Shown here piece after piece: positions 3,505 through 62,400 of a stretch of 64,000 bases of DNA (within the stretch, counting starts at the first letter, position 1; every line of letters begins with the position of its first letter). The notes under the pieces are model-generated. The model saw nothing but the letters and a program-made list of their open reading frames with translations. It had not been told where the DNA came from and searched no databases. Source of the DNA: Paraphysomonas bandaiensis (lineage: Eukaryota; Protista; Chrysophyceae); NCBI GenBank assembly GCA_965644295.1, contig CBFFRP010000645.1, positions 1-64,000 on the forward strand, in the 5' to 3' direction. Position numbers and translations under genes: made by a program.

Positions 3505-3800
3505 CCCGGATGCTTGACTTCAGCAGGCAACCCAATATCCCGAATGCCCTTGGGGTGGGTCCATTCCTAGATGCTTGACTTCAGTAGGCAGCCCAATACC
3601 CCGGATGCTTGTCTATTCGTCAAGGCCCAAAGACGTCTACACAATTGGCACTTATAAAGTGTCCCTTGTATCATGTACCACAGAAGCATTTGGCTATGAG
3701 TAGGCAGAACAGTATCTGCTGACTATGTTTGTGGCTCATGTTAGTTTACCGGACAACTCTCTCCCGTACTTATCCCCCAGAACATCACGAAAAGATGCGA
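3505..3800 (+). repeat. Dispersed repeat family B, copy 1 (with internal duplications of ggatgcttgacttcag...cccaata)
   Basis: Reverse complement of 33734-33943; shared blocks include gcccaaagacgtctacacaattggca, catttggctatg and tccccagaaca. Confidence 0.85.
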
Positions 3801-7400: not shown

Positions 7401-8005
7401 ATATGTATATACTGGATGAGTTTATCTTAATATGATGATGTTACAGTGAGAGCATGAGGCACAAGTATCAGACAGAGTATGTATACATACATACATGCAG
7501 CATACAGCCCACCATATGGAGGGATGGGTCTACATATACACACTATATCTCTATACGTATATCCATATGTTCCTTCTGTTGTATAGTCAAGATATCTTGT
7601 GATTGTTTTTTTTTGGAAGGGATCCGTTATTGAGGGATTCTATCGTACGCCTTTGTCCTTATTCCACTTCACTTCCATTCATTTTGACCTTTTTTTGTTT
7701 TGGTTTTAAACTCTGTATTTAATTGGGACCATTCATACAGAGTGTATGTGATTATGGATATTTTTCATCCATTTTCATGGACAAAAATCCAATTTACTTG
7801 AAATTATAGAATAAAAACCCATTTTACCTAAAATTATAGAATAAAAATTAGAAATAGAGAATTCAAAGTTTGAAAAAAAAAGTCATACATCTAATGAGAA
7901 CAATCTCAGCTCTCCTCCTCTTAACATACACACACAGCAGGGCCCTCATATCATCGTATCATACATCTCATTAAACCATATTACAAATCAAAGTATATTA
8001 AAAGA

Positions 8006-26177: not shown

Positions 26178-26931
26178 CTCAATAATTCCTTTAAATTATA
26201 TTGATATTGACAAATTATGAAGATGAAACTATTTAATGAGATCGTCAGTATGATCTCCATGTATCGTTATTGATGTTACACTCCCTCATGGGAATATATT
26301 CAACATCAATCCCTTTTTTAGGGATTTCATGGGAATCTTTATGATTTTATTGGGATATATATAATATATTTCATGGATTTTGTGATCTATAAATATGAAA
26401 ATACGTGTTTTTAGGGGTATAATTGTAAAATAATTCAATTCAACAAAAATTGATGGAATTTGGAATCTTCTATACAATTACACGATGAGCCAGTCCAAGT
26501 CGTGTGTACGACGTCTACATTCAACACCTGAAAACCTAAAACCCTCAGTTTCTGCAAGATTGCTAGAATATTCAGTATACTAAACATCAAATACGGCTTT
26601 TCTACATTAAATATCGTGATTTTGTATATAAGAACTTGATTACAGTAGTAATAAAACTAAAATTCTAATATTTATATAAATATTCGAAAAAATTTCAGCT
26701 AAATCAATGATTTTTATACTTCTATAGGAAATTTCAGTATCAATCATATACAGTAGTTCAAGTTACTTGTTGATCTTTCTTTCCTATAGAAATCCGACCT
26801 GTGACATACACACATACATATACACACATGCATTAGAGAGTAACACTATTCAACTCAGTGTTAATAGAATCAATTGTGTTGTAAGGAACACTCTATTCAT
26901 TCTCTATCTTTCATACAATAGTCTCATTTCA

Positions 26932-40811: not shown

Positions 40812-40955
40812 TAGAGCGAAAGTGGTTGCACCTTGGTGCATGCGGAGACGCACAAGCAGCTTTCGTATCGTTAGAAAGAGGGATATCATAGTTAAGCATT
40901 AGTTAAATTAGTTTGCTACATTAGTTCTGACTTTTACTAGTAATAAGGCATTCAC
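40812..40955 (+). mobile_element. Dispersed repeat family A, copy 4
   Basis: tagagcgaaagtggttgcaccttggtgcatgcggagacgcacaagcagctttcg...ggatatcatagttaagca...cattcac. Confidence 0.85.
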
Positions 40956-41404
40956 TACATCAGATGTTACATGAATATGTTGTGAAGTATTTGGATTAAT
41001 AACTATAATTCTTACTTGAAAGTGCGTCGTGTGTAAAACAAAGCATGGTCAAGGCTTACGTCTAAGTAAGTTAAACTTCAGTGTAATGCCCGATTCTAAC
41101 ATGGCAGCAAGTGACAGTTCGGATGAGAAGGCGAAGGAGGACAGCAAGAAGTTTGACAAGTATCAGGCTGAGGTATCAGCTCAGAAAATCAAAATTCATC
41201 TAATGAAGAATGAATATTCACGATTATGTCTTTCTAGTAACACTGAAATCACTATGTCTAACAAAATTATTATCATAAATACACTAGCTGAATTTGTTAC
41301 AATTAATTTCTACATATAATATACTGATCGCTAGTAAGAGCACGAGATAAGAACTGCCCCATTTAGCACAACAATCAACCACTGTGTTGCATATAACAAA
41401 CACT

Positions 41405-44400
41405 TTACACCACAGAGATTTCAATCTCACTGGTGGACTGCAATGGACCACCTTGTCCAATGTACCCACCATCATCTACCTCAATCTTTATACTATCCAG
41501 GAGACCAGGAATACATCCACTCTCCCCACTGCATATATATTTCAAAGACGCTAGGGCCGTATTGATCTTGTCAATCGGACCATATATCTCTAATACTCTC
41601 TTGGAATCCACTATCATGTCAGTGCTCGATACCAATAAGGAGACATCGTCGGTTTGTTCAAAATAAACGTAACCCACTCCCGCCGATACCTTTGCAGTCA
41701 CTGGTGGCAGCTGTTCAAATCCAAACGAGTCGGTCAGCTGACTGACATCATCAAAATCTGGGTCTGATAATGCCACAAAGTCGATTGACAAGACAGCATC
41801 CAATCGGGCGGTCACAAGACCCTCTCTGGTAATTGATATTTCAGGGGCTTGGTTTTTGCCCGTAACCACGATACGTATGCTAGCAGTGCTACTTCCACTG
41901 GCATCGCGGATGTTACACAGATCGGAAGATGCATTCGCAGAGGTTGGAGCATCTCTCATAGAAAGTGTTGGATCCGAAATACTTTCAAAACTAGTGCACT
42001 CAGGCAAAGTGTCTTCTGCAGTAATTGTAAGAATCGCATCACCAACGGTAAGAGTTCCATTAGGCGGGAAATAATACAGTGTCCGCAGCATTATGTTAAT
42101 ATTTCCTAAAGTCCCAGATAGCACAAAACGTGACGATATCAGTGGGCCAGGAATAGTTGCGAGCACTTCCTCCGATGGCAACGGAGTTTTAGCAGTCGCT
42201 TGCAGCGGCTCCGCATATAAACTAACAATTTCTTGCATCGATTTCGATTGTCGTAAATACTTCAGTATGCGTTCGACGAACGCTTCATACTCTTCCCTCT
42301 CATCTTCTTCTTGCACAGTGTCAATACTTTTCGTGGTCCATCTTGTGCTATCCCCTGCAAGTGTCTCCACGAAGTCCACTCGCTCTGGTTCACCCTCTAC
42401 ATAGTCTTTGAATGGTCGCATCATGAATTCATCGAATCCAGCACTCAAGGCGTAGTTACGTTCGAGCACAAAGGATAGACTCGGTGCAGTACCAACAATC
42501 ACAAGATGATCAGGCCGGGAAGTTTCTCTCTCCCAATGGCGAATCATTCTAACAGCCTGCAGGCCATCCCAACCCTCTGACACTTCCATGTCCATAATTA
42601 CTAAATCAAAGGGGTCAGAAGCGCTACTGGTTATTTCGTTGTAAGCTTCAAGACCATTTGAGGAATGCACGACACTGTGGCCAAGACCAATGAGAACCGA
42701 CGTAAGTAATATCCGATTGCTTAATTCACTATCAACCACCAAGATGTGCAATATACCCGTGCCTTCATCAACATCGGCGCTATCCATGTACACTGGAGCA
42801 AGAACTTTAGGAACAGCAGGCAGCACCAAGTATCCCTTATCCACCTCTAATGTCAAAGTAATCTCGTCTCCAGGGCGGCCATCGATATCTGTTACGACTG
42901 CTGCCTGGTCAATTCCTCGTATAGCTTCTTCGCTCTGAGACCTGAATCCCCCTCTTGATAGCGCAGTTTGAGAGTGTTCGCCTCCTCTACTGGCAGCTAC
43001 AAATAGTTCACTTCCTAACACCCCCATTCGAGACGGGAATGCAGCATCAAGGCTCTCGTGGTCGAAGTAGAGATCATTGGATGTGCGCTGGAACACCCGC
43101 TGAGTACCTTCATACGTACCATCTGTACGCCACAACTGAGAGCCTCCAAACCCTTCTTCGGAGTCCACGCCTTCGACATACAGCCCATCTGTCGCAGTAA
43201 AAAACAAGTACTCGCTTTCATCGTGACCCATACTAGTCGGATGAATCAATGGCACAGTGGTCATATGTGATGGCACACTACTCGGTCTACCTTTACGGAT
43301 GTCTCGCACCTGCTGAGTTCCTGAGGGTGAGCCGTCAGATGCCCACAGTTCCCTTCCAGTGCTTCCATCATCAGCTTGGAAATAAAGCTTTCCTCGAAAC
43401 CATGTGAGATACTTGGGGTTTGAACCACTTATGCCAGGATTAATATCTTTTACCATGGTTGTACCTGATGTTGTGCCATCAGACTGCCACAGCTCATAAC
43501 CAGATGATGCAGTAGTGGCAGCAAAATATACAGGAAGAATAGGGTCGTTATCAACGTTTCTTGATGCCTCAAACCCATATGGACTTGAACTCTTACCACC
43601 CAATGCAATATCTACCCAACCTAGTGGCACAACACGTCCGCCGTTGGAACGTCTCCCTCCGCCTTCTCCGGGCCTATGCATGAACCACAGTTCGCGGCCC
43701 GATTCAGGATGAGTGGCGGAGAAAAACATCAGATGGCCTGCCACAGTCATGTACTTCGGATCGGATCCTGTTGATCCCTCGTACATCCCATCAGCCACAA
43801 GTGATACCAGCTCCGCCTGCCCGATGGACTCCCCTTTCGTTCTCCATAGCTCTCTGCCGGTATCACGACTGTTAGCTGAGAAGTACAAGTACTGATCAAA
43901 TGATGTAAGGTATTTTGGGTATGAGCCCGCAGTGCCTCTATAGACATCATCCAGTCGATAAGTGCCTTCAACTGTGCCATCCGTACGCCAGAGCTCGTTG
44001 CCAGTGTACTGCCTACATTCTTGGCCGCTACACGCTGCTAACAAAGAATTGGGAGTTCCACCTGCAACACACACAATCCCTGCGAAGTCAACTTCCCGCA
44101 ATACCTCAAGCGACGGTTCCACATCCGGACGTATGGAATCGCCCCTCCCAGCATGTTTATAAGCTAAAGTTTCACGCGAATCAGAGAATAAGAAATGAGT
44201 TCGCCTTACCCCACCCCACATATAGCCCTCCCACCCACACTTATTGACGTAAACAGATGATTCATACTCATGTCCCACTGCGGTCGCCTTTTCGAATTCA
44301 CCGTGGTCTCGAAACTCTTGGATACCCTGTCTCTCACCTCTTTCGCTGTACCCATATGAATGCCACATGTGCTCATGATCATGGTCATAATATGAAGTGA

Positions 44401-47400
44401 ATATCTTTTGGGCCTCATCAGTTGATGCCCAGTGATATCCGACCGGACAATCATACACTCGATCTGGGTTCCACACACTTGTATTTGATACCGCGTAATA
44501 GACCGCATGGTTAAACGTACTCTGACGAAATCCTTCACATTCGTCGAATGTGTCCGCGTTCTGCATCCATTGAATGTCGACACCATCCGCGCCAAAGTAG
44601 AGCACACCATTATGAGTCGTAAGAAAACTGGGTACAGACTCACGAACACCGGGGTTAATATCCATAAAGAGTGAGGCCACGTTAGGGAGCTTCGTGGAAC
44701 TATCACCAGAGGAAACGCTGTCACTTGACGACATACTCGAGTCCTGCCGCCACAACTCCCTACCACGGATACCATCATTTGCCTGGAAATACAGGAAACC
44801 ATTGTATTCAACAAAGTATTTCGGATACGAACTTCTCTCTCCAGGATATATATCAGAGGCCAAAGCCGTACTCCACTCAAGCTTTCCCACACCCCAATCT
44901 TCACGGTCAAACGGCTTGTGTGGTTCCTGAAACTTCCACACCTCGAATCCACTGCTGAGACGGCTATCATAACTCGATCCTACTAAACTGTTATCGATGT
45001 TAAGGTTACTGACTCCGTTAATTCGGATGAAATCGCCCTCAAAGACAGTGAAAATCGAGACTGCAGTCGAGTCGTCCCCAGTAGTGATGATAGGTGGATC
45101 ATTTTTCGGGTTGACGATAACACGGATATACCTCACATCTCCTGTCTGCTCTTCATCAACTATATCCGAGTTTGATACTGTTATGTACAAACCAGCGGAT
45201 CGACCAAAATAGTTTTCTGAAGGCTGAAACCCTATTGCACTTAATGCAACGTTGACAACAGATAATGGCGCGCGTATCGTAATATCATCAGGCTCGTTGT
45301 TATCCAGTATCAACCCTTCGAACCCACTTGACACCCCACTTCCTGATGCCGCACTGTGCTCCTGCAAGCCGACCATGTGAACTGAACCGAATGCCGCCCT
45401 AATATTGAGTCGTATGACGCCATCATTCGCAACTTCATCAATTGCACGTACAGAGGACCCCCTTATCACCAGCAGATCGGAGTCCTCATCCATGTACAAA
45501 GCATTTGTATCAACAACAAGTGCAGAGAGCATATCGGCTGACATACGATGAGAGTCGTAAATCTCGCCTGGTACATGCAACACAGGATTGTCCTGAACCG
45601 CTTGCACGTGAATTCGAACCAATTTTGTTACAGATACTATATTCGAGGCATTACCCAAATCTTCGACGGTAATATTCAAAATATCGAATTCATCATTGAG
45701 AGCAGAGTTCCAATTAATATCTGGTTGGTAAATCAGAGAGTCAACAGCCTTGTTAATGTCATGCAATCTCCCCTCAAAAGTAACGCTCTTCCACCAAATG
45801 TAGGTATCAGCAACAGAATGGCGAGGATTGTCCTCCGTGGTGTCCTTGCTATTAACGCCAGTATAACGTTTTCTTTCCGCGAGAGTTCCAGATATTGGAA
45901 GCTGGCTCAGTCTGGAACGCTCCTCGGTTGTATTGGGGGTGTTTATCACAGATAGACCACTTAGAGAAATAGGCATGACAGCCCCATAGTTAGTCGATAA
46001 GTACATGCGCAACATGCCACTCTCTTGTTCACGATAAACTGATTCGTTCCAACTTACGGTTTCATCAAATGGGTCATGACGCTTGTAGGTCGGTGGTCCA
46101 TCAATAACCTCGGTGTAGTCCGCATCTGACACTCGAATATCTGGAATCACTATGCGGCTGTCTTCCATAACGTGCTGAAGCTGTGTAGGTGCATATAAAA
46201 CCGGGGCATCATCTACGGGCAAAACTCTGAGAGGAATAGTCTCATTCGACCACTTTGCACCACCAACACCATAGTTTCCACGGTCATTGACGTAAACGGA
46301 CAAGTAGTCAGGACCATAATAATCCGTATATGGTTTGTATTCCAGTGATGAGAGACATGTATTTAGTTCCTCTAGTGTCCCATACACAGAAATATTTCCT
46401 TTGTTTTGGGTGCTTACGAGTACCACAAGACCATTCGCTGGAGCTGTCGGTAAGAAAACGGTTCCGTGTTGGACAGAGATCACAAGAAGAAAAACGGCCC
46501 CTGAATTGTAGGCATCGATATCGTCGTCATGAACTGAAATACCTGATATATTGGAAACTACATCTTCAAGAAGATCAATTGTCCTTATGCTCTCTATGAC
46601 CCGGCATGTGTTCTCTTTAGGTGGCAATTGTGTCATTTTCGTGATACTCACTCGACCAATTCCACTTTCACAAGGAGACTCTTTAGTAACAGCACCTGGA
46701 ACAACGATATAGGGGACGTTATTGGGACCTTCAGATACTGTTATAAACATATCCACAGAGTCTGTCAGCGATATTTTCTCCACCCCTTCATATATGCTGT
46801 TGTTGCTAAGGTCGGTCAAGAAATCACTGTGTCCAAGGTCGTCGACAAAAAAATGAAGAGAGTCCAACAAACCCAACTTGGCGTAATTCCAGTGCGGAAG
46901 GGGATAGTAGATTAAATGCGACACCGCAATATTTAGCTGCTCTACTGGCCCTTTCAAATGAGTTTCCTTATCCATTTCTCCTGAGCCGACAAGTAGCGTC
47001 ACATTCGATGGGAGAGTAGGAAATGTTACCCATCCGTAATCAACAGATATCCGCATAAATATGTCATGATCATAAGAGTCAACATCATCAAGAGAGATAT
47101 GCGACCCTACAAGGAGACTTTCGTCTTCCCCAGTGCTGAGAGATGCCTGGAGGCTGGTCCACACAGGAGCATCATTTATAGAACGGATCTCCATAGGTAG
47201 CAATTTCGTGTCACAAAAACTTTCCAGATTTTGCGTGTTTTCGCAGACTTTGACTGATATACTATCATCACCAAAAAAATTCTTATCTGGAGTGTACATA
47301 AGTTGGTCGATCATAGAATTAAGTGTCTCAATTTGAAATCCGATTAGTGACACAGTTCTCCCGTCAGTGTAGGCGTTGATAAGTCTGGCGACAGTGTAAT

Positions 47401-50400
47401 TGGCGGTACTTATCGAACCATGATATGAAGTAATCGTAACCTCCCATGCGTGACGTTTCACCAAGCCAAAGTCGTCCCCATACTCGTCAATATCGGATAT
47501 ATATATTTCTCCCAGCTCATAGGAAGTATCTTCATCAATGTACACTGTTGGTACATGGATGACATCCCACGGCATATTCTCACTCGACGTAATAAGCGGC
47601 TCCAATAGCTCCATTCCGGGAAGATGAACACACGCGTAATCATTAGTGGGGTTGACTCTCACTAATATCTCTGCATTGGACATAGCTTCATCGCCAAAGT
47701 CATTCATGTGTAATACATCGACAGCAACAATGTTGATTCGCGCCAGAGAACCCGAATCCTTGCTGTTAAAATTACGTGAAGGCGAAAATATGATACCACC
47801 AAGAGCACTATTGATATCGTTCAGCTTGCCTTTAAACTTAATGTAGGAACTAGCAATCCCCTTTCCAATTAGAAACTCTAACGACAACGGAACTTCCTCA
47901 AAACTGATCACGCCATGAGGAGAGCTTACTGTAATTTCAATTAACTTCTGACCACTACTATGTGTCCTTGGCAAAGTATTGGGTAGGTGCCATCCCCGTG
48001 AACCCTCGGGATCATCACCATCTGACACATGTATCCCACTTATGAAAACTGCTTCATCTTCATACACTGCAAAAATATCATCCGGTGTTACTATAGTGGG
48101 TGTGTCAGGCTTCCCCCTAACATTAACTGGCAACACTATCCTATCAGTGAGTTCACAAGAGGAGCTATATTTCGATTCTCTCGCATAATCACACAACGGA
48201 CCCAAACCCGTATTCCCCAAATCATTAATGGTTATAACGATTTCGTCTGATCCGAAATATTCGGCATTTGGAAGGTAGTACAGCCCATCTAAAGCTACGC
48301 TTGTGTAATCCACACTGAATGTGAGTTCAAGAATGGAAAAAAGGTTGTGGTTGCTGTGCTCCACAATCGTAAATGGGACAGAAGACGCTGAATAATCCAC
48401 CCCAAAAGTACCATTCATAGCGTACAGTGACAACTTCATTTCTCCATTATTTGCCTCCATAGCATCAACGTCACGGACATGTATTCGGGAGATTGCACAC
48501 CTTGAGTCTTCCACACAAAGAAGCGGCGTCACATCGATAACACTGCGTGACAGTTGGTCGTATTCAGCCATGAGAAAATCATGAATAGCAAGATTATCTA
48601 TACCAACTACTGGAGGGTCATTAGCCGGCTCAACAATAATATCAACGTAGCTCTCATCACTCAGAAAACCAGCATCCGTGGCAGTGATTTTAATCATATC
48701 CAGTGTGGTTATACCACGAACTGCGGCATCTCTGTTTCCTGTGCCTGAATTCCAATTCAGGTCTGGGATATATAACATATGTTGAAGAGCCACATTCACA
48801 TCGCCCAACGGCCCTCTCATCACAATATAATCATCATGCAATCCAGAACCGTAGTCGAAAGAAATCGTGTCAGGCACTCTGTACAGCGATAATTTACCGT
48901 GTGAAGTATTCAGAGTAACAACAACAGTTGAATCAATAATACTTCCATTCGGAGACACCAGATTCGAAGCATACTTAAGGAAATCAATCGATCCTTTATC
49001 AGCATAGGTCGTGTTATATATGGGGTCATTGTTCAAGGGATTACGGCCTATATTCTCAGTGTTTCGAAGAATATATCTGTCACGCTGCGTTACAAGTGCT
49101 ATATCCGGGTCATGTATTCTAAAGGAAAGAGCCGACATGTTTACGACTTCTTCAGATCGCACACCTACGGCAGTAGATACTTCACGCACAACATCTTCAG
49201 ATACACTTCCAATTATACCAGTTGAGTCCTCCATTGTTAGAAGAGCTGAAAACGATGGAAGGGCTATATGTGGACGATCATTAACGGCATCTACCTCAAG
49301 AACTATTTTTCTCGTCAAGTGCCTTGGCCCACCGAAGCCAATATTACCTAAATCGTTAATGGTAATCTCAAAGACGTCGTTCCCAAACCAATTCATATCC
49401 GAGGTATATGTCAGTGTTCGAAGCACGGATATCAACTGGTGGTACCTTCCATGTAAACATATTTCTCTGAATCCTACCATCTCTCCTTCGTAAAAGACAG
49501 GAGTATTCGATATGATGGAAATTGAGCCCAGATCGGACACTTCCAGGGTGCCATATTGCACTGACAATGTTGCATTGAACATGTTTCCGACTATTGAATT
49601 ACGATTAGTATAATCATCTGAGAGCCATGACCCATACTTCGCCCAAGAAGCGGTCAGCATAACTTCATTTTCAACATTGTATATATCAATATCGGGGTCA
49701 TCGATTGCGAAGTCATGCCCAAGAGAGTATGTCTCGTCTTCTCTCAAATAGGCGACTCCAACATCCCACGAAGTTTCGTTATCATACAACACTCCCAGTG
49801 CTGCCGATTGAAGATGAATCACAGGCGGATCATTCAAGGGTAGAATGTGAACTAACAACTTTTTATTTACAGCAGCGGAGGTTTCGTTGTCAATAGCGGA
49901 CACATGACCATCCCACGCAGAAATACGTATGTAGTCATAGCCATTCGCATTTGTTGCCGGCATATACTTCAAGGTAGACAGCAGGAGGTTGACCTCAAGC
50001 AAGTCACCGGCAACAATCAATGCACCCCCGTCTACAGCTAAGCTTCCGTTGTCTTGATCGGTAGGTATCGGTTGTCCACGACTAATTGTAACGCTAGCAG
50101 CAGAGCCAATATTCGGGCTCTCTCGCTGCACGCTAACGGTTCCACGATCACATGTGATTAGAACTGTAAGTTGTCCCTCGCCAGAGTCGATATCTTTGAT
50201 CTGAATGCCGTGCTGTACAACTTTTCTGTGAGGATCTATACCACCCATGCTACCTACAATAATCATGCCTTCAGTCGACATAGCAGTCATATCACTCTCA
50301 GTGCCACCCCCAAAGAGAATAAACTCACCACCTAGTCGAACGTCAGTATCCTCGTATATAACGAGAGTATGTCCGTCACGCAATGGGGTTTCTCGCCACA

Positions 50401-53400
50401 GTATCTCAGGAGGGTCGTTAACTGGTGAAACAGTCACCATGAACGTGAACATGGTATCACTAACTGCAGAAAATGTGTCCAATGCTCTATTATTGCGGTT
50501 CGATAGCCTAATGATGACAGTGACATTTCCATTCCAATTATTTTCCGGTTGGTACTGTAAGCCGCTTACGGCAGTGGCTATATCTGCTGGAGACCCAGCA
50601 ATCATAACAGTTGTGTGCCAGTCAAGCAAAGACCCTCCTGCAGTATTCACTACTCCCTGATAGCCGGAGTGAATACGGAATCCATAGTTATGAACTCCAT
50701 TCCTGACCTCTCGCACTCGGGTCACAGATCCCACACCAGTCAGTCGATTCCCTTCAACTGCGAGCAGAGATGGTGACAGCGCGTAGGGTAACGCAGAATC
50801 CATCAGCATAGATATGTACCAGGTATACCCCCTTTCCTTATTGGGACCTGTCCTACCCACAAATAAGCGCCCCGTTCCAAGCAGAGGGTCTGTCATCGAA
50901 TCGAGTGACATCAGAGCATCTCTGAGTTCTACTGCGCTGATATCATATGGCAATGGCACAGTCAAGTCGCCTCCATAAGACAGCCGGAATGACCCACCCA
51001 CGAAATTTGAAGGTCTCACTGTTCGTACAGAAACTGACTGGTCGTTGTGGCTTTCTGTCGGAAAATGTGCAACTCGCACATTTAGATAGTTGGCACCATG
51101 ATATATAACTGTCCATGATACGTACGGTGATTCCTCAGCTGCATCACCAATACCAGCCACATACTTAGATACAGTGATTGAATCCACGAATGAAGAAAAA
51201 AAGGAAACCGATGACAAGAGACTTTCGAGAGATTCACCCTCCTTAGTACCAGCTGCTTGGGCATACGGCTCATACGGACCTTTCACCTCTTGCTCCTTCA
51301 TAGAAACAGTAGCTACATATATCGGCCCAATAACCTCATACGCCGATATATTAACTGGGTGAGATACTGTGAGATAGAAAGCAGGATAGTCACTACTAAC
51401 AATGGTTGACCTCGCTTGGCTATGATTGGCAGACACAAAATCGTATCGTATTTCAATTACTTCCTCATGGTGATTGGATTCAGTAGATACAGCAAGTACA
51501 CGTGGACTTCCGAAGCCAGGTGTCACTCGTGACACTAACACATCAGCTGGGTAATGTACAAGACCAATATCACCAGACTCTACCGTCCAGTCCCCAGTCA
51601 AATTCGTAGTTATAGGCTGAATTAATGGTAACTCGGCACCGCCACTCATTCCAGAAACTGCAAAATACGCTATAGTCCACGTGTAATTGCTTTCTTGGCC
51701 TACGTTGGAACGAGTAACTGAAACAGCATCAATAGACTCCATGTCCATCAAAATCGATGCCATCATGTCTGCTGTTGCGTTAAAAGCAATCGGCGAGCTC
51801 ACATCCATCCCAAAACCGAGCCTGAAGTATCCACCTAATGAATTACCAGGACGTGATCGCACAACTTCAACTCTTTCGATCACTCCGCCACTAGTTTCGA
51901 CAATCGAATTTCCATATACAGTCATCAATGAAAAGTCAAAACTAACCTCATGGAAAGTAACTTGCCATTTACAACCTGTCCTACAAGCTCCATCGCCCCT
52001 GTCTGTATCATCTCGCTCGACAGATACCTTACCCCCTCCACATCCTTCAAGCATCTTCTCGATCTTCGCCTGAATAGAGTGTCCAATTCCGCGTCCATCC
52101 CCATATTCACTGCGCTCTGAACTTCTCATAGCAACAGCGTTGATATGAATATCATCAGTAATCAGTTGCACAGACGCTGGTGCACTACCGTCCTCATATA
52201 CAGGACGCGGGGCTCCACACTTGGCGCCTTCCACAACATTCAGGCTCAGTCTAAAAGTAGCGTTCCAGAAATGGCTGACGGGGTAAGAATTTAACAAGTA
52301 TGTTTGTATGGACTGTATTTCATCAACGTGATACGCAACTGTCATTACCTCCTGAGTTTCTATAGTGCCTCCATGTGCAGCAGTCACAACTGCCTCCAAC
52401 TGAAGTGAACTTTGTGTTGTACGGTCCAAACCATTCGGATTAGTCACAGTCAGCTGCGGAAAGTCAAACACGTCGTCCTCGTCTACAGTAAGGTGTACAT
52501 CGCTGCTAGAAATCGAAACAGTTGGGGATGATCTAGATGTAATCACTTGCACTGGAAGGATAACTGAGGATGTAGCACCTTTGGAATCTGTTATCGTAAT
52601 ATTGATAATGTCACTGCCATATGTATACGATTCCGAAACATACTCGGCACTGAGCAACAAAGCATTTACAGAAGAAAGATCACCTCTACATTCCACCCAG
52701 AAAGAGTCTCTACTAACTACCTCAAACACTTTAAACTGTGCCATAGACACGTCTGAAAATGATACGTTGCCGTGACCAACTGCAATCGACATATGGTAGA
52801 CTTCACCGTCTGTCATGTCCACGTCATAAACAATAGACTTATTCCTAAAACTATCAGAAACAACGGGAACTGCTGTATATTCACTGACATTGATGAGGCC
52901 CCACAGTTCAATATCAGGGGCATCATTCACTGGTAAAATTGTTAATGTCACATTATCATGGGCAGTCATATGAACTCTATCTTTTCCATAGTTTCCGAGG
53001 TCGTCAACAAATATATCCATGTAGGCATTTCCATTGAAATTTCGTTCTGACTGTACGTACACTTCACGAAGAGCGCTATTTATATCATCAATTCTTCCTT
53101 GAAATGACAAAGCCCTATTGAACGTAATGTCATTCGGCATTGTGGAATTCTTTTTGAAAAAGCAGTGTGTACATTGTACATGTACTCGAGCAGATGTCAC
53201 TAGCTGAGAAGACCGCCGCTTTGAGTACAGTGGCGAATTGCTGTCACGTAAAAACAGAACATCTGGATCGCTAACAGAAAAAGGGAGTGGAATAGCAGCA
53301 TCCTCGTCCACCCTCAATTCAGTGTAACTGATAACGGGTGGGTCATTTTCTGGTACCACCGATACCATTGAAACGGCAGTGGAATTAAGGCTTTTGGTAC

Positions 53401-56400
53401 GGTCATCATACACAGACAATGTAACTCTAACATTGCCATGGAAGTTCTTCGGGAAAGCAAACGCGTACATGCGACATGCTGTCAGCAATGACTTGATCTG
53501 AGTGGTAAAGTGAACTTCATTACTTCGTGCATCTTCAGCGGTAAATATAGTATCGGACACGTTTTCGTGAACCTGCGGGAGGCTGATGTCTACAAGGTCA
53601 TTATAGTTTTCTGTAATTCCAACGATATCAACGTGAAAACTACCATGATACAACTCTTCGCCTGAAAACGGATGACTATAGACTAAATCGTCTACAATAT
53701 TAGCGGCGGACAACAGTGAATCTTCTGCAACGCGAATATCTTTGAGAATGAGAATAGGCGGTTCTCTTTCGTCAAGCACTTCAAACGATATCGTTTTAGA
53801 ACTCTGCTTTGGACCATCAATTCCGAAGTTTCCCCTATCATTGACAGCAATATTGACAGTATAATCCGAATTCTCATGCATACCATCCGGAATTGAATAT
53901 GATATCGCACTGATGTAGCAGTTTACAGCGTCAATATGACCAACAATTGTGAGGCTGGAGTACGTAAGAGGCTCAAACATATCGTCCGTATCATATCTGC
54001 GGTCAAACCAGTTTACAATACTCTCGCGCCTACTGGAAGCGTCATTACAAGTCTCAGCACTGATAATCCCAGTGAAATAATCAATGAATTCTATATTACA
54101 GACAGAGGCAATATGAGTGTCCACACGCAACACACCACAATCAGGAACCGATATATCTACATGGATAGTCCCAGTGTTTTCGTTCTTGCCATCGAACACG
54201 TCTACATCCAGTATATACAACTCAAGGTCCGCTAGCGACATTTCTTCGTTCCTCTTAATTTTAGTAAGCATCTCGTACTGATCTAACATAGAAACGACTG
54301 GCTCATCATTTATCGGCAGTAAAAAAAGACTGAGCTCGTACACCTCCTTCGTATCACACTGAAAGTAAATAAGAGCAGTCATTTCACCATGAGAATTCTC
54401 TCTCGCAGTAAAGACCAACGTAGGCAGGATCTCGCTCAATTTCGAAACACTACTGTAAACTCGAAGAGCCATGTCACCATGTGATTTGGATATGTACGAC
54501 ACTTCCGAGCCTTCCCAGTCACCCTCATAACCATTTATAAAAGAAAAATGTCCATATGAGGAATAAAACTCAATCGTACACACGACTGATGACGACTCAT
54601 GACCAGAAGTTAAAAGAATAGATTCCGTACCAGTAAATCTGACTGGATTGTCCTCTTCACCAACCACTGCATGACGTGGTACAGTCAAGTATGGCGCGAC
54701 AGCAACTGAACATACGTTGAACTCAACAACAGCGGTTGTTGTGCCTTTATCGTCCAGGCCGTGAGTAGCCACATGAGCATTATCAGATATGAACAATTCA
54801 ATGCTAACTAAATCTGTCATATTATATTCAATAGATTCACGGGACCCAGAAAAGTATTGCACATTTCCCTGTGATAAGTACGATGTGAGTACGTCCGGGG
54901 TTCCTCGCAGTAGTACCGCAGATGAAAGAGTCCCATCATCCATGACATCAAGGTCCGAGAAAGACTTCTGATATTGAGGAATCGAAGCAACTACACTGCT
55001 GTGTGAAAGTTGCGACTGAATTCGTAAGTAGAAGATCGGCATCCAGCGTGAACCAGGAACACTAACGTGACTTTGAATGGACACAAAGCTCAAATCAACC
55101 ACATCACCTGCGGATATATTTCTAGCTACGGTATCGATGATTATTAGTGGCATTTCAAAGACCGGTAAAATATCTATTTCAAATGATGCTCGTGTTGAGG
55201 CTACCAATTGTTTGTCGTCTTCGATATCCAATTGCAGTGATACGAAATCGGACGCGGAATTTTCTGCATATGGGGTGTACAAAATATCATCAAGAAGACT
55301 TCGAATGCGAGCAACATCGATAGTTAACGATACGTGCTTCAAGCTGGTCGATACCACTTCAAAAATTCCATCACTGCTGCGATAGCTGTCAATACTTAAC
55401 TGTCCTTCGCTTGCGGATACAATTAGAGCGGCTCGACATGCGTTGGGGTTTACACATGAACCAACAACAGATTGGATGGAACACGCATCACCAATGTAAA
55501 AACTGCTGTTAACTGCAACTTTAGCCACAGTTGGACAGGCTACAGCAACTTTCATTGGAATGTCGACCACAATACTAAAAGATGCAGACACTGACTCGGC
55601 TCTATTAAATGGAAGAGATGGCTCAATATTTCCAGGGCGTCCAAGTACAGTATGTGTCAGAGAGGTAACCAAAATTGTAACAGTGTCGGTATGAAGAGGC
55701 ATAACAGCAGGCTGATACTGCAGATACGATAACACGGTAGCGACTTCTTCTTTTGAGATAAAAAATGATATTTCTCGACTGCTCGTGGATTTTATGGCAT
55801 TATAAGGCTTATAAGACTTTAAATTTTGTACAAATGCGTCCGATAACGCGAGTTTACCTTCATTACACCACACTTCGATTAATAAAGGGTAGTAGTCATC
55901 GATATCTGTAACAGTAAACGCTCGAAGATACATGGGGGCTCTTGAAGTAATCACTTGTCCAAGAACATACGGGGATGAATAATTGACTGATATCACAGGA
56001 GCATCATCCACACTGTCGACAAAAACTAAAAACTCCTTAGAGAGAGCTGATGGCACATTGCTAGTTGAATCCTTGAGTGTAGACACTGAAAATAAAACAG
56101 ACCCTACAAAATCCCCTGGTGGTGTATACACAATTTCAGCTATAGCTTCATTGATGTCATCCACACTCGACGCACGGATATGAAGCAAAGAACCATGGCT
56201 GAATATATCTACTCCGCGCAACATCTCTACAGTCATCGGCAACAGTAGTTGGCCTTGTTCACATGATATTAGTACATCAACAGTATCAGCACTATCACAT
56301 AAAACCGATATGTTCAAATTTCGTAACATACTGTCTTCCTTCATATGTACTGTAATATTTGGTACAACAATAGACATTCCCCCAACAGAACCAGAATCTG

Positions 56401-59400
56401 ACACAACTCGGATGGGTACCATGCGAGATACAATTTCAGCCACTCCAAAGGGTTCCCATCTAGAGACACTGAGATGCAAAACATCATCAGATGTGCCTTC
56501 AAAGCGTACATTACCCAAAATGCGGTTAATTGTATGCTGTGGCCCAACAATACTATGTGAATTCGGTTTATTTTGTAGTTTATACCAACCAACTTCAACA
56601 AAGTCATTAGATGTCGCATCAAACTGATACGATGGCAACGAAATAACTCCACCTTTCTCCGTAGAAATATTCACCGACAACATTTCAGAGCCGGTCAGAT
56701 CATCTGGATTCGCCACGCCGGCAAGCACCAGTGGCACAGCTACTCTAGCTGGTGCAATAGCACGAGCAAGGAACACATCTACGGTGATAGGGTCCTCCAC
56801 GGGAAGAACAGATACTGAACATGATGTTGGATGGGATTTCGACTCGTCTGGTACGAACCTACCCATATAAGCGAAAAACTGCAGATCAATAATGCCGTAG
56901 TAGTTGGGAAATGGCTTTATCACTATCAGCTGAAGCAGCTCAGCGATATCGACAATTGGTCCACTGAGACTATAAACACCTTCATGTCGAGCGAACTCAA
57001 CTGCACCCACAAAAGAATGTGTAAACTCAATTGAACAATCTTGCACGCCAGCAATATCGATGGCCACTATATTGGCATCTTTTACTACATGATCAAATTC
57101 CAAGGACAACTGAAGCCGAGCTACAGAGTCTTCATCTACCTCAGAGTCGAAATTCACAACACGCAGTTTTGGCAAGTCGACTGTGGGAAGAACATAGACA
57201 GGAACTGTAGCCACAATTTCATGAATTGCTTCCATATTCCCTATGCCCACTGTGTCATTCCCAACAAATGCTCCCATATCAAGAGCAACTATGCGTAAAG
57301 AGTCTGATTCCACCCAGTTTTCTTGAATCACCTTAAGATTACCTTGGCCACTGAACAGCAATGGATTATAATCAATAGAAAGATCGATATTAGGTCCAAA
57401 TGCTACAGATCCTGACACGTCACCAACTCGACTAATATTGAACTGATTCGGTTCCCAGTTCGCAAGGGAGGTGAATTCAATGATGTACTCATAGCCAACT
57501 TTATATCCATCATCCGATTCATTCGCAAACGTAAACACGGTGACATCATTGATACCTTCCAGCTCTTCCAGTGCAACTTCAATAACTTCTGGTTTCGCGC
57601 CGACCTGAATTGATCTCGTTCTCGCTCCATTGCAGATCAAATTGTACTCGCCAGAGAGAAAGTCGCCTTTGGTCCGCACCAACTCAACACGTATGTCTCC
57701 GCGTAAGTCGCCCCTTCTATTGTTAGAGCTTAACACAACAGAGTTGTTCTTTGCAGATAGGAGAGGAAAGTTCACCCCATGTTTAGGTGGGATATTTAAG
57801 AATCTCACTTCCCATGAATAAGTCTCTTTTCCATAGGAATCCTCGTACGGTGATCGTGAAACCACAACGATAGGCTTAAAATTGTCACTACGACTGGAAT
57901 TCGTACCAACTGTAGACTCGAAGGCCATGTCAAAGCAATGGTCAACAAGCGCTTGTATAGCAAGTTCGAGCGAATCAGCACTTACATTTGTCGAGAGTAG
58001 CTCAGTTTGAGCATATGCGTTTCCTACCGACGTGTTAGATTGGATAAAATATGAGCAATCAAGTGACAATCTAAAGGCACTACTATTGTGATCAACGCTT
58101 CCCAATGTGGTAGACACTGTAGTAATCTTTTGCACCTCTTCGTGATGGCGCAATGAGAATATAGAAAGCACATAGATCTTATTTCGTCCGTCAGTTTCTA
58201 CAACCGAGTTCCACTCTTCATCTGGAATGTACTGAAGCGAAGCAAGGGCTTTGTTGACATGGTACAATGACCCCATAAACGTTAAGTTTCCTTTGATATC
58301 AAAGTCAGAAAAAGTGATCCCTTCATGATTGGACAAGAAAAGTTCACCATGCCCTACCATAAGCGACATAGCTACTTGTGCTTGCATCTGTGCAGCCGCT
58401 GTCAAATGATCAGAATCAAGTACAGAAATACCCGGCAGATTTGTCATTGTATCTTCGAAGAGTACTATTCCTCTTGTAGGAAATAAAACTGTTGGAGAAT
58501 CATCAACAACAGATATTGATATGTTCAGGGTCTTTTCAATGGGAATGGAAGCCAATGCCCCCATGCCAGACATCGCAGCCAGCTTGAGGTGGTCCTCGAT
58601 CACAGCACGATCCCACTTTCCATGTGTCACGAAGTGTCTTGCAGGGAGTGTCAACCCATTGGAAGGAAAATAAACGATGCTGGACAACAGAGACGATATA
58701 GATTCCTTATCTCCATTGAGGCGATACGAGCTTCTCAACGGGCTCAGCGATATTGGCTCAATCGACTTGTCCCACTCCATGTCACAGTCCACACATATGC
58801 CCCACAAATTGTCAACATCCATATTATATGTCTGAGAACAATACAGGCGGTCGTTTCTCTGTCCAGTCATATGTATACAAGATGAATACGCGTCACCGCC
58901 GTGAACAAAAGGGAAATAGCACCTCGTAGATGTATCACCGTCAAGTGCAGCACCAGGAAGTGCGGTGTTCGTTGGAGAGAGTAAGCATTTCTCAGAAGTC
59001 AAAGATACGTCACTCCCACTGCCGATGTGCAAATTTTCTACAAGACTACTCCCGAAATCTATTAAGAGCAACAAACTGTCTACGTTACCATTCGAATTTA
59101 ACGTAATATCAGTGACAGTGGTTTGCTCGAGCCCTTCCACCAAGCGAAGCTTGCTTTCAAGCTCAGATTGTAGACTCGGGCTGTTAAGTTGAACTTTAAA
59201 ATCAACTACCGGTTTGGTAGCAATTATTTCAACACTGCCCGACAAAGGTGACATACCAGCGACAAGTCGACGTGCAGAAAACACAAAATTTTCAGAAAAT
59301 TGTGACAGACAGATTCGTCCCTCCCAAACATCAGGTTTCAAAGCCACATCCGTGTTATCTCTAAGTCCACACTCCTCGTCAGGCATAAGAAGTGGAACGC

Positions 59401-62400
59401 TCCCCATGCTAGAAGGAAAAGTGACAGTCCAAGAATACACATGTTTACCCAAGGATCCCACCTCTGATGAGTACTCAGACCTGGCAACATCAACGCAGCA
59501 AACACCTGCTACATAGGACACCGCTGCTGCAAATTCATCATCCGAAGCATGAGCAGAAACCATAGTTGACGCTTCGTAAAGTGACAATGGAAACGAACCA
59601 GTCGATGCATCATACGACTTACTAGTGCTCCAAACCTCGGTCGAGGTATTATACACAGCAGTAACCGAAAACACCTGCACTTCATTAATAGAAGCAGATG
59701 ACCCTCGAGTAGTTTCAACGACATCAAGATGTGTCCATGGTGACAATGTCATATTCTGAATAAGAATGGGCGGTACATTCCCAGTCGATCCACTAACAAC
59801 ATAAAAATTACTATCAAAATCTTTCTCAGACTCAGATATAAATGTGATGGTGGTTGAAAACACCTCTTCCGGATTACCGCTCTCTGGACATATCCTTCCA
59901 GAAGTAGAATTCGACGTCAGAGACACTCCCGCCACAGTAGACAGTGACAAGAGAGTTTCGAACAAAGTACTGCCATCTCCTGAGCAAGGCTCACCAGAAA
60001 CCACGTCATTATTATCACAAAGTGGTAGAGAATCCGGTAGTATATTATCGTATATCCAGATATATCTAACAGCCTTTTCTCCCCGGAATGACACACTAAA
60101 AAATTCAGCATCAGGAACCATGTCGGATACAACAAAAGAGTCGAACAAGGACTCCGACGAACAGTGAAGAGTTTGAGTTTCATTTACTTGTGACCAGCGT
60201 GGAGTGTTAATTGACAGCAAATATCTATCACTCGATTGGGCATCACCGGGCGCTATACGCCTCACATCAACACTTTCGGAGCCTAGGCCAACCAAATCAG
60301 CATCTTCAATTGTAATATCAGGAACATGTATGGTAAGGTATTCATGGCTATCTAGCAAGTGGGACAGCCCTGATGACACAGAAACAGTAATAGTATATGA
60401 CGTTAATGGAACCGGTCCAACTTCACTCGTTTTCGTCGTCGAAACTTGGAATGCGCAGCTCTCGGCGATGCATATTATATCCTCCAGTGCCTTCGTAACT
60501 GTTGCACTCGTGGCTGATTCTGTATGATCTCCATTTCCAACGCTCATCCAAGATGTAGTTCGGGAATAGTTTGGCGAATCAATACGCAACCTAAATTTGC
60601 CGGATATTTTGTCGCCAACATCTCCTCGTGTGTGGGTTAGATATACTCTAGGAGATGGATATCCCAACACACCCGCAGTGTCCACACTCATTCTAGGTAA
60701 CTCCACAACTTCGTGAGACTTCACAACAGACACAGACCAAAGACAATTACCCTCGGGGTTATCACATCCTCGCGGGATTGTCTTGGTACTTCTGATCCCA
60801 GGGAGTCGGCTAAGACGAAAATCAACCTCATCCGCAGTCGCACGAACAGATATTTCTTGGGTTGATGCGGTTACTCCGTCAGGGTACTGAAATGATATTT
60901 TGATATAACCACCGAGGGGTTCTGTGCCTCGAACGATTTCCTCCACGTCAAAAGATATAGAATCATCGTTTTCAAACGGCAAACAAAGAGAACAATATTC
61001 CTCTTCCAGTATGTCAACATTGGTTGACCCTTCACTCCACACTACGTCGACGTTGTCGATTGTCCCACCAAGCGTCAAAAAAGTAAGTTTCCACGACCAA
61101 GAGTATATTAACGAGTCATCCAGTTCACCGTTTACGACGTTTTCAATCGATGTTAGTCCCAGCACATCCATTAAATCTACTGCATTTTGAAGTTGTACAG
61201 TAGTATCATCTGCACTCGCACTTGAATTGAAACGGATGACATGACTACGAAGTGGCTGTAGGCCATGGGAACGTCCACGACCAAACGATAAAACAAAATC
61301 CCCATGCAATGTATCATTATTTCTACTTCGTAAGGATATAAGTTGCTCTTCAGCCTGCAAAGATCCTTTCTCTGTTCGGTACACAGCAATGGAAGGAATA
61401 ATTGCACTCGAATTACTCGCAACAGCCGAGTGCACTTGAAACCGCAGAAGCGGTAAAACGTCCCGTGCTGCATTAGTCAGAAAAGTCACAAAGAGGTAGC
61501 CGTACAAAGAAGACGGAGACGTTTCGTTTCTCAACTGAAAACTCACTTGAACCTTTCCTATATTCTTTAGGCCTTCCAAAGCACCTTTCAACGATAGCGC
61601 AGAAGCCTCAAATTGGCGATTACCGTATAGCACAAACGCAGAAGCATCAGTAATATTGTAACCATCAAAAAATACAACCACATCTATATCGTTCATTGGG
61701 ATTTGTCCATTAGTAGAGTGGAGCTCAAGAGCCTGAGTTTCATATCTCCACGGTATTTCCACTCTTATGCCAATCGTATCAGCAACTTCCCTCTTCGACT
61801 TCCCTCCATGAAACCGCACCTCGACATCTTTTCTGAGAGGATATTCAAAGGCATGCGTGTCCTTTAGAAATGCAAAGTTGCCATATTCACCTGATGCTAT
61901 TACAGCACTAACATTGGGCAAAACAGTATTTGAGTCCTCCGCCTGTTCAGATAATATAGTCACACCACCGACCGCAAGCGCACTGTGCTCACTCACAACC
62001 AATGGACCAGTGTGATCAGAAGTATGTTCCCATACAAGTGCATTTCCGCTATGTGTATCAATGTCAACTTTGACAGAATACGTATAGGTCTTCACACAAG
62101 GATAAGATATATTATCCAGGCATTTTCCATAGAAACCATTATCAGACACGTAAATAGTGAGTACATCAGAATCACCATTGACGTCATTGCTATATATCTT
62201 CGCAGACCTCAACGCTTTCGTTAATGCCTTCGGAGTTCCCCTAATACTCAGTCTGTGCGGAGTATCAACAACGAGACGCTGACACCCGCTCCGGGCAAGG
62301 CCTGCAGATGATATATCTACATTTATCCCACTAGCAGAATCTATCCACAAGTCCAGATAGCCGATATCCAACATAGAAAGCGAAAAGTCTGTATCGCTGA

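Follow-up and report, generated by a model that had tools for sequence, protein, structure and literature searches.

Receiver domains are textbook cytoplasmic phospho-switches, and the locus described here raises the question of what one of them might be doing near the C-terminus of a giant, adhesin-like protein. The original prediction, made on the window (the whole stretch of 64,000 nucleotides that was analysed), offered two alternatives: either the domain had been co-opted outside the cell as a conformational or ion/ligand switch, or the protein is an intracellular rod controlled by a His-Asp phosphorelay. The reading favoured here, and probably the correct one, is that the domain is a phosphorylation-independent pseudo-receiver carried by a giant rod of the secretory pathway, where it would act as a binding or structural module.

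Gene structure and transcript support

The window harbors, at 41405..64000 on the minus strand, the in-window portion of one unbroken coding frame, whose stop codon corresponds to positions 41405-41407. The frame runs past the window for a total of 8,969 codons; the first ATG is located at C645:68291-68293, beyond the window, with an in-frame stop seven codons earlier, and this start was deduced from the reading frame, not from a transcript 5' end. Counted from that ATG, the protein is 8,962 aa long, so that it had rightly been called giant and the length of more than 7,530 aa given for it holds as a minimum. The mature form has a predicted mass of ~978 kDa (about 980 kDa) and a pI of 4.5, and the protein contains 86 N-x-S/T sequons. 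The gene is intronless.

Three RNA-library contigs from separate studies, namely X11 (of the poly(A) type), X13 and X17, follow the locus colinearly over 41205-43525. They end at 41205, 41262 and 41282, that is, 120-200 nt beyond the stop codon, and thus delimit a 3' untranslated region at 41205..41404 (minus strand). The RNA contigs crossing the receiver include poly(A)-selected marine metatranscriptomes. These data bear on the possibility that the arrangement is an assembly chimera, or that the receiver is encoded by an intron-like segment spliced from the mature mRNA. No support was found for either reading; the three RNA contigs run colinearly from the 3' untranslated region through the receiver into the propeller, and no joints are reported within the gene. 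An independent contig of 18 kb, labelled as another organism, covers 41679-46400 gap-free, and the module order is identical in at least 20 homologues of different sample origin. The probability left to a chimera or to splicing is practically negligible, and the retention of the receiver in RNA, on which the original prediction depended, is borne out.

A bacterial contaminant was also considered and rejected: the contig carrying the gene is 195 kb long and belongs to a genome with silicon transporters, the RNA contigs include some from poly(A)-selected libraries, and an orthologue is embedded among eukaryotic genes, its neighbours being Ras, Arf and PsbU genes of eukaryotic algal type.

Architecture of the rod

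The repeats of the rod are of types known from bacterial surface proteins. In the N-terminal part, Cadherin_4 (43 bits) and Big_9 (29 bits) score above their cut-offs; the tandem-95 profile NF012211 reaches 81.5 and 30.1 bits, below its cut-off of 90, and the repeats are related to that type. A single fibronectin type II (FN2) module with its four cysteines intact is located at 58793..58921 (minus strand; 37.7 bits).

The C-terminal part, also encoded on the minus strand, includes an ELWxxDGT beta-propeller region at 43130..44800, containing seven E/Q-L-W motifs and matching TIGR04534 with 278 bits over eight stretches just upstream of the receiver (cut-off 65 bits); no other gene in the 62.5 Mb genome matches this profile. 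Blades 1 and 2 are separated by a Cys- and His-containing insert of ~177 aa (44009..44539) for which no Pfam match was found. The last ELW-type blade, with its motif at 43130-43138, is followed by the N-terminal half of a repeat, including a D-x-D ... L-x-L element (together 42833..43150); the C-terminal half of the same repeat, from a G-T-L-x-x-I-N element onwards, is found only at 41786..42160, since the two halves are parted by the insertion described below. The protein is closed by a last cadherin-like/tandem-95-type repeat (41408..41785), whose closing motif D-[DE]-G-x-x-G-x-G-G-P is kept in the orthologues.

Identity and fold of the receiver-like domain

The receiver had been placed at 42410-42751, in agreement with the PF00072 match at 42407..42745 (minus strand; residues 803-915 of the last 1,248 aa). 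The match passes the cut-off of 30.2 marginally: the isolated domain scores 35.8 bits (E 9.6e-9) and the domain in its context 31.3 bits, as compared with 60-94 bits for the true receivers of the same genome. Among ten orthologue segments, only two reach the cut-off.

The AlphaFold model, obtained with an alignment of 87 sequences that are mostly canonical receivers and therefore bias it toward the receiver fold, has a mean pLDDT of 79.5 and the order β1-α1-β2-α2-β3-α3-β4-α4-β5; it supersedes a single-sequence model with a pLDDT of 39. The fold had been described as complete. This stands for β1-β5 and α1-α4, modelled at a pLDDT of ~90, but not for α5, which has no confident model (the residues after β5 have a pLDDT <50, so that the fold is possibly incomplete at this point), and the catalytic quintet has two substitutions. 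A Foldseek search with the modelled domain returned receiver domains in nearly all of the top 50 matches, the best sequence and fold matches being the hybrid-kinase receivers GacS D1, Sln1, CKI1 and AHK5. A homodimer prediction of the module, computed without an alignment (score 0.00), speaks neither for nor against a dimer, and a feature search of the ESM Atlas gave no usable match. Judging from model and alignment, the nested domain is a real, CheY-like member of the receiver family that is catalytically degenerate.

Catalytic residues

The receiver quintet reads D-S-D-T-R, compared with the canonical D/E-D-D-T/S-K. The metal-binding acidic pair (DD) is therefore D-S, while the acceptor Asp at the end of β3, aligned with that of GacS D1, and the Thr at the end of β4 are both present; Arg replaces the invariant Lys that precedes the cis-Pro closing β5. 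The closest orthologue, P0001, keeps the same quintet, acceptor Asp and Thr included. Across the family, the acceptor Asp is retained in ~5/30 members and the second residue of the pair (DD2) is acidic in ~5/28 relatives; the Thr position is variable, or uncertain in the alignment, and the Lys is found in none of the 25 aligned members, whereas all 13 canonical receivers of the same run have it.

The active-site pocket is thus not conserved across the family, and the domain is therefore to be considered a pseudo-receiver (PsR), in line with the definition given in PMC12632262; it almost certainly does not serve as a phosphorelay switch. It is not an aspartate-less receiver (ALR), having kept its Asp, but most of its orthologues would qualify as ALRs.

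Could the domain, outside the cytoplasm, still use its acidic pocket in this species, as a conformational module dependent on Mg2+/Ca2+ or on a small ligand? Both cations are abundant in seawater, the D, D and T of the pocket are retained here and in P0001, and the topology predicted from the sequence (see below) is secretory. Furthermore, the family-specific conserved residues W194, Q198 and W206 lie in the α2/β3-α3 loop/α3 region, which ligand-binding pseudo-receivers often use (PMC12632262). The direct metal ligand DD2 is, however, a Ser in this protein and is rarely acidic in its relatives. Since the pocket is not conserved across the clade, any putative metal or ligand function would be lineage-specific, and we regard this explanation as a minor possibility. 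The proposal that the extracytoplasmic domain works as a switch has found no support in any of the findings.

Topology and predicted secretion

The protein starts with a leader in which the first Met precedes a hydrophobic core of 12 residues and a V-x-A motif of cleavage type, with small residues at -3 and -1 (read by eye). In a Kyte-Doolittle scan of the whole protein, this leader is the only peak >=1.5 free of charged residues and proline, and no TM-like stretch was detected in the last 1,290 residues. The translation ends with ...EIEISVV, and the previously noted lack of both a hydrophobic segment around the receiver and a C-terminal anchor is confirmed. The orthologues P0022, P0033 and P0056, whose N-termini are complete, likewise start with hydrophobic leaders. 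The giant protein is accordingly predicted to enter the secretory pathway and to be luminal or extracellular, and the compartment of the nested domain would not be that of the cytoplasmic His~P donors.

The opposite arrangement, that is, a giant cytosolic protein in which a working phospho-acceptor, fed by a His-Asp phosphorelay, regulates the rod from inside the cell, would find suitable partners in a genome with at least 51 canonical receivers and two HPt genes; the Asp and the Thr are present, and substitutions in DD, T or K (including K-to-R) need not abolish receiver phosphorylation (PMC12632262). Against it stand the signal-peptide-like N-terminus here and in the three orthologues, the FN2 module with its disulfide cysteines and the repeats of bacterial surface-protein type, as well as the complete loss of the Lys, the frequent loss of the Asp and the low PF00072 score in comparison with the canonical receivers. 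Such an arrangement appears very unlikely. Hence, of the two alternatives put forward originally, the topology outside the cytoplasm is supported (by the leaders, the lack of TM segments and the four FN2 cysteines), whereas the intracellular phosphorelay-controlled rod is disfavoured.

Nested insertion and conservation of the domain

At least 30 relatives, metagenomic or transcript, share the C-terminal module. Nine relatives lack the receiver and have 66-117 aa where the receiver-bearing ones have ~300; the genes around one of the nine, P0076, gave no pointer to its taxon. Comparison with these nine delimits a nested insertion of ~224 aa at 42161..42832 (minus strand), made up of a short lead-in, the receiver-like domain, an acidic linker and a helix. 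The alignment places it inside a single repeat unit, the penultimate one, and the segment 42833..43150 on its N-terminal side is conserved both in receiver-bearing and in receiver-less relatives. In a tree of the flanking sequences, the two sets are parted with a support of 92/89. The genome itself (62.5 Mb) contains no second copy of the flanks, and the receiver segment has only weak matches in it, to ordinary receivers (best 32% identity).

The insert might be a decaying relic, i.e., a receiver exon that domain shuffling brought in on a single occasion and that persists in a tolerant loop without a function of its own. The catalytic residues are indeed eroded, PF00072 is below the cut-off or undetectable in 8/10 orthologue segments, the insert is absent from the nine relatives mentioned above, and its linker is poorly conserved (18-49% identity). 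The insert has nonetheless been kept across a clade whose end branches measure 0.4-1.7 substitutions per site. The receiver segment, at 23-56% identity to the orthologues, is at least as conserved as the neighbouring repeats; core and family-specific positions are conserved at 60-97%, with R201, R204, G196, G238 and A237 at 90-97%, and no frameshift or stop was found in any family member. A relic is thus unlikely. Strain-level differences over 4.7 kb comprise eight synonymous and seven non-synonymous changes, none of them inside the receiver, and are too few to gauge selection.

Taken together, these observations are consistent with the following scheme. The rod would be an acidic ~980 kDa chain of bacterial-type cadherin-like/tandem-95-type repeats, with one FN2 module and a C-terminal ELWxxDGT propeller, directed by its N-terminal signal peptide into the secretory pathway as an adhesin- or matrix-like protein. 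In one branch of the family, the receiver would have entered a loop of the penultimate repeat together with its acidic linker; there, whether luminal or extracellular, the domain would be out of reach of the histidine kinases and HPt proteins of the cytosol. The chemistry of phosphotransfer would have decayed, the Lys being gone from every member and both the acceptor Asp and the second Asp of the metal-binding pair from most, with the alpha/beta core maintained under constraint. The lack of kinase/HPt access, the decayed chemistry and the preserved core make a phosphorylation-independent pseudo-receiver the most likely state of the domain, and we infer a binding or structural role for it, possibly as a globular module shown off from the rod beside the propeller head.

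Relationships with known systems

The PsR and ALR domains (PMC12632262; ALR survey PMC4395418) share with the nested domain PF00072, a CheY-like fold (modelled here as far as β5), the loss of one or more catalytic residues and a presumed independence from phosphorylation; the residues missing are DD2 and K here, plus D in most orthologues. However, the PsRs known so far belong to cytoplasmic regulators, kinases or clock proteins, whereas this one is nested in a repeat of a ~980 kDa algal protein with a predicted signal peptide and no signalling-type output domain. The closest receivers are those of hybrid kinases (GacS D1 7qz2, Sln1 8phx/5kbx, CKI1 3mm4, AHK5 4euk), with an E of 4e-10 and 31% identity for GacS D1 and TM-scores <=0.8 by target length; a β3-α3 'x-D-G' loop and an α3 'R-x-I-R' pattern are common to them and to the nested domain. 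These receivers possess the full quintet and are cytoplasmic, beside a kinase or HPt, unlike the present one, with its Lys-to-Arg and DD2-to-Ser replacements and no modelled α5, in a protein without any kinase or HPt module.

The bacterial ELWxxDGT (TIGR04534) and tandem-95/cadherin-like giants share the propeller and the rod repeats (Cadherin_4, Big_9, NF012211), but the present protein differs from them in its eukaryotic algal host (read as a diatom), in a predicted signal peptide of eukaryotic type instead of a bacterial secretion tag, and in the presence of the nested receiver and of FN2. Among diatom proteins, the Trailins are giant secreted adhesives, repetitive, with a signal peptide and a mass of up to 894 kDa (bioRxiv 10.1101/2023.03.06.531300). 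The present protein resembles them in its very large size, repetitiveness and bacterial-surface-type domains, its own secretion being predicted from the sequence; the Trailins, in contrast, carry Choice-of-Anchor-A domains and PTS-rich regions, and a receiver domain is mentioned nowhere in the paper describing them (bioRxiv 10.1101/2023.03.06.531300). Searches of open-access text found no description of a receiver in an ELWxxDGT protein, of an extracellular pseudo-receiver or of a signal-peptide diatom protein with such a domain, consistent with the original view that the arrangement had not been described.

A signalling fold that is normally cytoplasmic has thus probably found a second use outside that compartment, stripped of the chemistry of phosphorylation. 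A more specific proposal, to which we assign not quite an even chance, is that this is the first extracytoplasmic PF00072 domain, inserted once, kept over a deep marine-algal clade and turned into a module of a new kind that, beside the propeller head of a giant matrix or adhesion protein secreted by diatoms, serves in binding or in cation sensing outside the cell. A conserved and expressed receiver relative in a protein bound for the secretory pathway would mean that the fold can be recruited for an extracytoplasmic job other than phosphotransfer, and would extend the pseudo-receiver field to eukaryotic extracellular proteins. The family also represents a clean natural experiment that separates the residues maintaining the fold from those maintaining the chemistry, the Lys having been lost in all members and the Asp in most, with the core retained. 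Finally, it might represent a group of bacterial-style surface proteins of close to a megadalton, encoded without introns in diatoms that are abundant in the sea, and of interest for the study of adhesion, aggregation or the matrix. Its Pfam annotation is essentially empty because the receiver falls below the cut-off in most orthologues, and several relatives carry the JGI label 'ELWxxDGT repeat protein'.

Extent and Modules of the Giant Protein

The assembly containing the window comprises 62.5 Mb in 669 contigs, and the window corresponds to positions 1-64000 of contig C645. It carries the 3' part of one open frame on the minus strand, whose stop codon lies at 41405-41407 and which continues past the window end. 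When the contig was followed for 9 kb beyond this point, the frame was seen to be closed by a stop at C645:68315-68317, with its first ATG located at 68291-68293; the full frame is 8,969 codons long and encodes a protein of 8,962 aa, longer than the >7,530 aa originally noticed. The computed mature protein has a mass of ~978 kDa and a pI of 4.5 (1,169 acidic vs. 578 basic residues) and contains 86 N-x-S/T sequons. Its rod repeats give weak-to-moderate matches to Cadherin_4, Big_9 and the tandem-95 repeat, and a fibronectin type II (FN2) module at 58793-58921 (37.7 bits) retains all four cysteines. The ELWxxDGT model TIGR04534 matches eight stretches immediately upstream of the receiver (REC) domain (278 bits), where the propeller had been claimed to lie; its seven E/Q-L-W motifs run from 44758 to 43130, and a genome search with TIGR04534 gave no match besides the giant gene. 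Between the first and second ELW blades, an insert of ~177 aa (44009-44539, minus strand) is flanked by Cys residues and contains a His/Tyr/Glu-rich stretch; it lacks a Pfam match and may be a metal-binding or disulfide-bonded propeller subdomain.

Identity of the Receiver and Its Presence in RNA-Derived Contigs

The receiver family model PF00072 aligns with residues 803-915 of the C-terminal 1,248 aa, i.e., window positions 42407-42745, scoring 31.3 bits within this longer chain and, when the domain is taken by itself, 35.8 bits (E 9.6e-9), the cut-off being 30.2 bits; the receiver predicted at 42410-42751 is therefore confirmed. The same stretch is matched by NCBIfam hybrid-kinase and response-regulator models, and the closest solved sequences are hybrid histidine kinase receivers, with GacS D1 (7qz2, E 4e-10) followed by AHK5, PA1611 and further ones. 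An alignment-based model (87 rows, mean pLDDT 79.5) displays the order β1-α1-β2-α2-β3-α3-β4-α4-β5, with low confidence beyond β5, and in Foldseek it matches almost exclusively receiver domains, the best being GacS D1 (TM 0.79 by target); since the alignment consists mostly of canonical receivers, this model is biased toward the canonical fold. The Pfam and phmmer evidence is independent of the model, and by sequence and predicted fold the domain is assigned to the PF00072 superfamily.

Three contigs from RNA libraries are colinear with this region, namely X11, from a poly(A)-selected marine metatranscriptome (41282-43525), X17, from another metatranscriptome (41205-43504), and X13, from a probable culture transcriptome (41262-43332). 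Each differs by 0-2 substitutions and no gaps, with no joints reported within the gene, and all of them terminate 120-200 nt beyond the stop codon, where a 3' end would be expected. A further contig of 18 kb, labelled as another organism, extends over 41679-46400 and differs by 14 substitutions but no indels. Being assembled contigs, the RNA sequences speak for presence and colinearity, rather than for expression level or strand. Taken together, these contigs indicate that the receiver segment persists in RNA-derived sequences and does not stem from chimeric assembly; the possibility that it is spliced out or chimeric, raised as an objection to the original prediction, is contradicted by colinear, gap-free contigs crossing 42407-42745, and an artefact is hardly credible. 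Several genes for silicon transporters (PF03842, best score 89 bits) are present in the genome, against none in 14 control genomes, which makes the organism a diatom or a silicifying organism very closely related to diatoms.

N-Terminus and Topology

The protein begins with M-H-H, a 12-residue hydrophobic core, S-T-V-T-A and then Q-L-Q, thus showing a short n-region, an h-region and small residues at -3 and -1. No other segment of the protein is as hydrophobic as this leader (Kyte-Doolittle 1.89, 19 residues); peaks of at least 1.5 are few elsewhere, include Arg, Asp, Lys, His, Glu or Pro and resemble β-strands. Hydrophobic leaders are also present in three relatives predicted to start with Met (P0022, P0033 and P0056). 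The leader has no Phe at +1, which presumably sets it apart from a diatom plastid presequence. Either as a cleaved peptide or as a signal anchor, it would place everything downstream, receiver included, in the lumen or outside the cell, and the intact FN2 cysteines would fit an oxidising compartment. A Kyte-Doolittle scan of the last 1,290 residues revealed no TM-like stretch, and the chain terminates in a repeat without a hydrophobic tail, in agreement with the lack of a TM segment or GPI tail noticed originally.

Two topologies had been offered, i.e., a receiver outside the cytoplasm or an intracellular rod controlled by a His-Asp phosphorelay. The leaders found here and in three orthologues, together with the FN2 cysteines, favour the former. 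A cytosolic, phosphorelay-controlled protein appears highly improbable. In the genome, at least 51 canonical receivers were counted, with scores of 60-94 bits, along with two HPt genes, so that a normal cytosolic phosphorelay exists in the organism; the receiver of the giant protein (31 bits) is not among the 51 best genome receivers.

Relatives and Insertion of the Receiver

A homologue search recovered relatives sharing the C-terminal module: HMMER, run exhaustively with the last 581 aa against 1.84 billion representatives, retrieved 29 proteins at E <1e-30 and ~70 matching the non-receiver flanks. Many of them are fragmentary; the giant ones (P0002, 4,571 aa; P0033, 4,513; P0056, 4,889; P0083, 5,292; P0022, 5,973; P0152, 7,014; P0155, 7,525) carry the homologous module at or near the C-terminal end. 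The sequences come from JGI, ENA and Logan metagenomes, while P0014, with the run-type accession ERR1711871, comes from 'merc', which we take to be a marine eukaryote transcript catalogue. Several are named 'ELWxxDGT repeat protein' by JGI, and none of the relatives bears a precomputed PF00072 match. The 42-kb contig of P0056 also encodes Ras and Arf GTPases, PsbU, cyclophilins and an ATP-sulfurylase/APS-kinase/pyrophosphatase fusion; judging from these neighbours, its host is a eukaryotic alga with a red-type plastid. The opposite strand of this contig carries a gene for a 327-aa PF00072 protein (6997-7980), situated 2 kb upstream of the giant orthologue; the window gene is without such a neighbour, so this adjacency is not conserved. 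On the contig of P0002, a second giant gene (1-8446; 4,839-aa product running off the locus) is located directly upstream on the same strand, and may be either a tandem paralogue or a piece of the P0002 gene that the gene caller separated.

Both flanks of the receiver are present in 29 relatives, the distance between them being 248-465 aa in ~20 and 66-117 aa in nine; no paralogue of the flanks was found in the organism's own genome. An unrooted maximum likelihood tree of the concatenated flanks separates the insert-bearing rows (20) from those lacking it or unclear (10), with a split support of 92/89, below the strict threshold. In REC-less members, the 'D-x-D ... L-x-L-S' element of the repeat runs straight to the 'G-T-I-x-x-x-N-x-A-L-x-x-L-x-Y' element. 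Direct alignment places ~224-260 extra residues exactly between these two elements in the query, in its closest relative P0001 and in P0002, and these comprise a short lead-in, the receiver, an acidic linker and a helix. Since the remaining repeat units of the giant protein have the uninterrupted form, as do the REC-less relatives, the event is read as a gain, the receiver having apparently been inserted into a loop of the penultimate repeat (~42161-42832).

Catalytic Residues and Conserved Core

The five catalytic residues were tallied in two alignments (phmmer against the query, and an independent profile from the 87-row alignment), the calls in the most divergent relatives being alignment-dependent. 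All the canonical receivers of the same run have D/E-D-D-T-K or a near variant. At DD1, the giant protein has Asp and the family (n = 28) D 8, E 15, Q 3, S 1 and V 1, against D/E in 13/13 canonical receivers. DD2 is Ser, with Asp in 4/28 relatives and in 12/13 canonical receivers. The acceptor Asp (13/13 in canonical receivers) is kept in the giant protein and in ~5/30 of the family, the rest having Ser, Ala, Glu, Gln, Asn, Gly, Thr, Trp or Tyr. The T position is Thr (Thr/Ser in 12/13 canonical receivers) and is variable in the family, where its alignment is uncertain and differs between the two alignments. Finally, the invariant Lys (13/13) is Arg in the giant protein and is found in 0/25 relatives (Leu 11, Gln 6, Arg 3, Glu 3, Ile 1, Ala 1), an absence that holds in both alignments.

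A receiver missing any of these five residues is a pseudo-receiver, and one missing the Asp an aspartate-less receiver (ALR) (PMC12632262); on the residues aligned here, the domain of the giant protein is classed as a pseudo-receiver and most of its orthologues as ALRs. It is not regarded as a functional receiver, because two defining residues are replaced and the predicted compartment is not that of a receiver. Substitution of DD, T or K does not always abolish phosphorylation (PMC12632262), so sequence alone leaves room for residual chemistry in the present species. A lineage-specific cation or ligand switch still using the D/D/T pocket would draw on the Asp and Thr residues kept here, in a family where the pocket is not conserved, and is considered unlikely.

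Across ten orthologue segments, PF00072 reaches the cut-off in two, is sub-threshold in five and absent in three. A neutral relic is distinctly unlikely to account for a segment whose identity among orthologues is 23-56%, vs. 23-58% in the neighbouring repeats, and whose core positions L137, G196, R201, R204, E207, A237 and G238 are conserved at 90-97%, with D195 and D182 at 88-89%. Family-specific conserved residues lie near the β3-α3 loop and α3, i.e., W194 (for Met), Q198 (for Glu) and W206.

Possible Role and Comparison with Known Systems

The giant protein is probably a secreted acidic rod carrying a pseudo-receiver with a phosphorylation-independent binding or structural role. The leader would take the protein into the ER, from which it would be exported as a very long acidic rod made of the cadherin-like repeat types matched here. 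Near its distal, C-terminal end, the seven-motif ELWxxDGT propeller would represent a probable ligand-binding head, as suggested by the general role of propellers, and the repeat directly after it, in which the domain is nested, would display the pseudo-receiver as a side module. This module most likely acts as a phosphorylation-independent binding or stabilising domain, given that there is no His~P donor in that compartment and that the pocket is not conserved.

The domain resembles the pseudo-receivers and ALRs of atypical regulators, in which the fold is retained and activity does not depend on Asp phosphorylation (PMC12632262, PMC4395418), and its context is like that of bacterial ELWxxDGT/tandem-95 surface proteins. 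Also similar are the very large adhesive proteins that diatoms secrete and that carry domains of bacterial derivation, for example the Trailins, which reach 894 kDa and all possess signal peptides; no receiver is mentioned in the Trailin paper (bioRxiv 10.1101/2023.03.06.531300). The open-access literature searched yielded no account of a secretory or extracellular protein with a receiver-family domain, which is consistent with the original view that the arrangement is undescribed. The protein context is unprecedented for a pseudo-receiver, and so would be the compartment, should the predicted topology hold.

Other Features of the Window and Genome

With at least 51 receivers against only two HPt matches, and many receivers in frames of 190-280 aa, the genome seems to have a large two-component repertoire in which small single-domain receivers predominate. 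A minus-strand ORF (4771-5520), some 36 kb away from the giant gene, aligns with the first half of PF00072 alone (31.6 bits, profile positions 1-51) and probably represents a single exon of an ordinary response-regulator gene. A 20-bp satellite (34866-39931; ~250 copies, 91% matches), 1.5 kb downstream of the giant gene, accounts for the extreme AT skew there and for three overlapping plus-strand ORFs of 1,700-1,830 aa, which were rejected as genes. Just past the 3' end of the giant gene, a short element (40812-40937) is matched by very many contigs, with depth sums up to 68,668 in one run and many loose contig ends at 40812-40820 and 40862-40873; probably, it belongs to a dispersed repeat of high copy number or is SINE-like. 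The plus strand also carries gene fragments of a short-chain dehydrogenase (19093-19893, 130 bits) and an amino-acid transporter (Aa_trans; 26767-27708, 35.5 bits).
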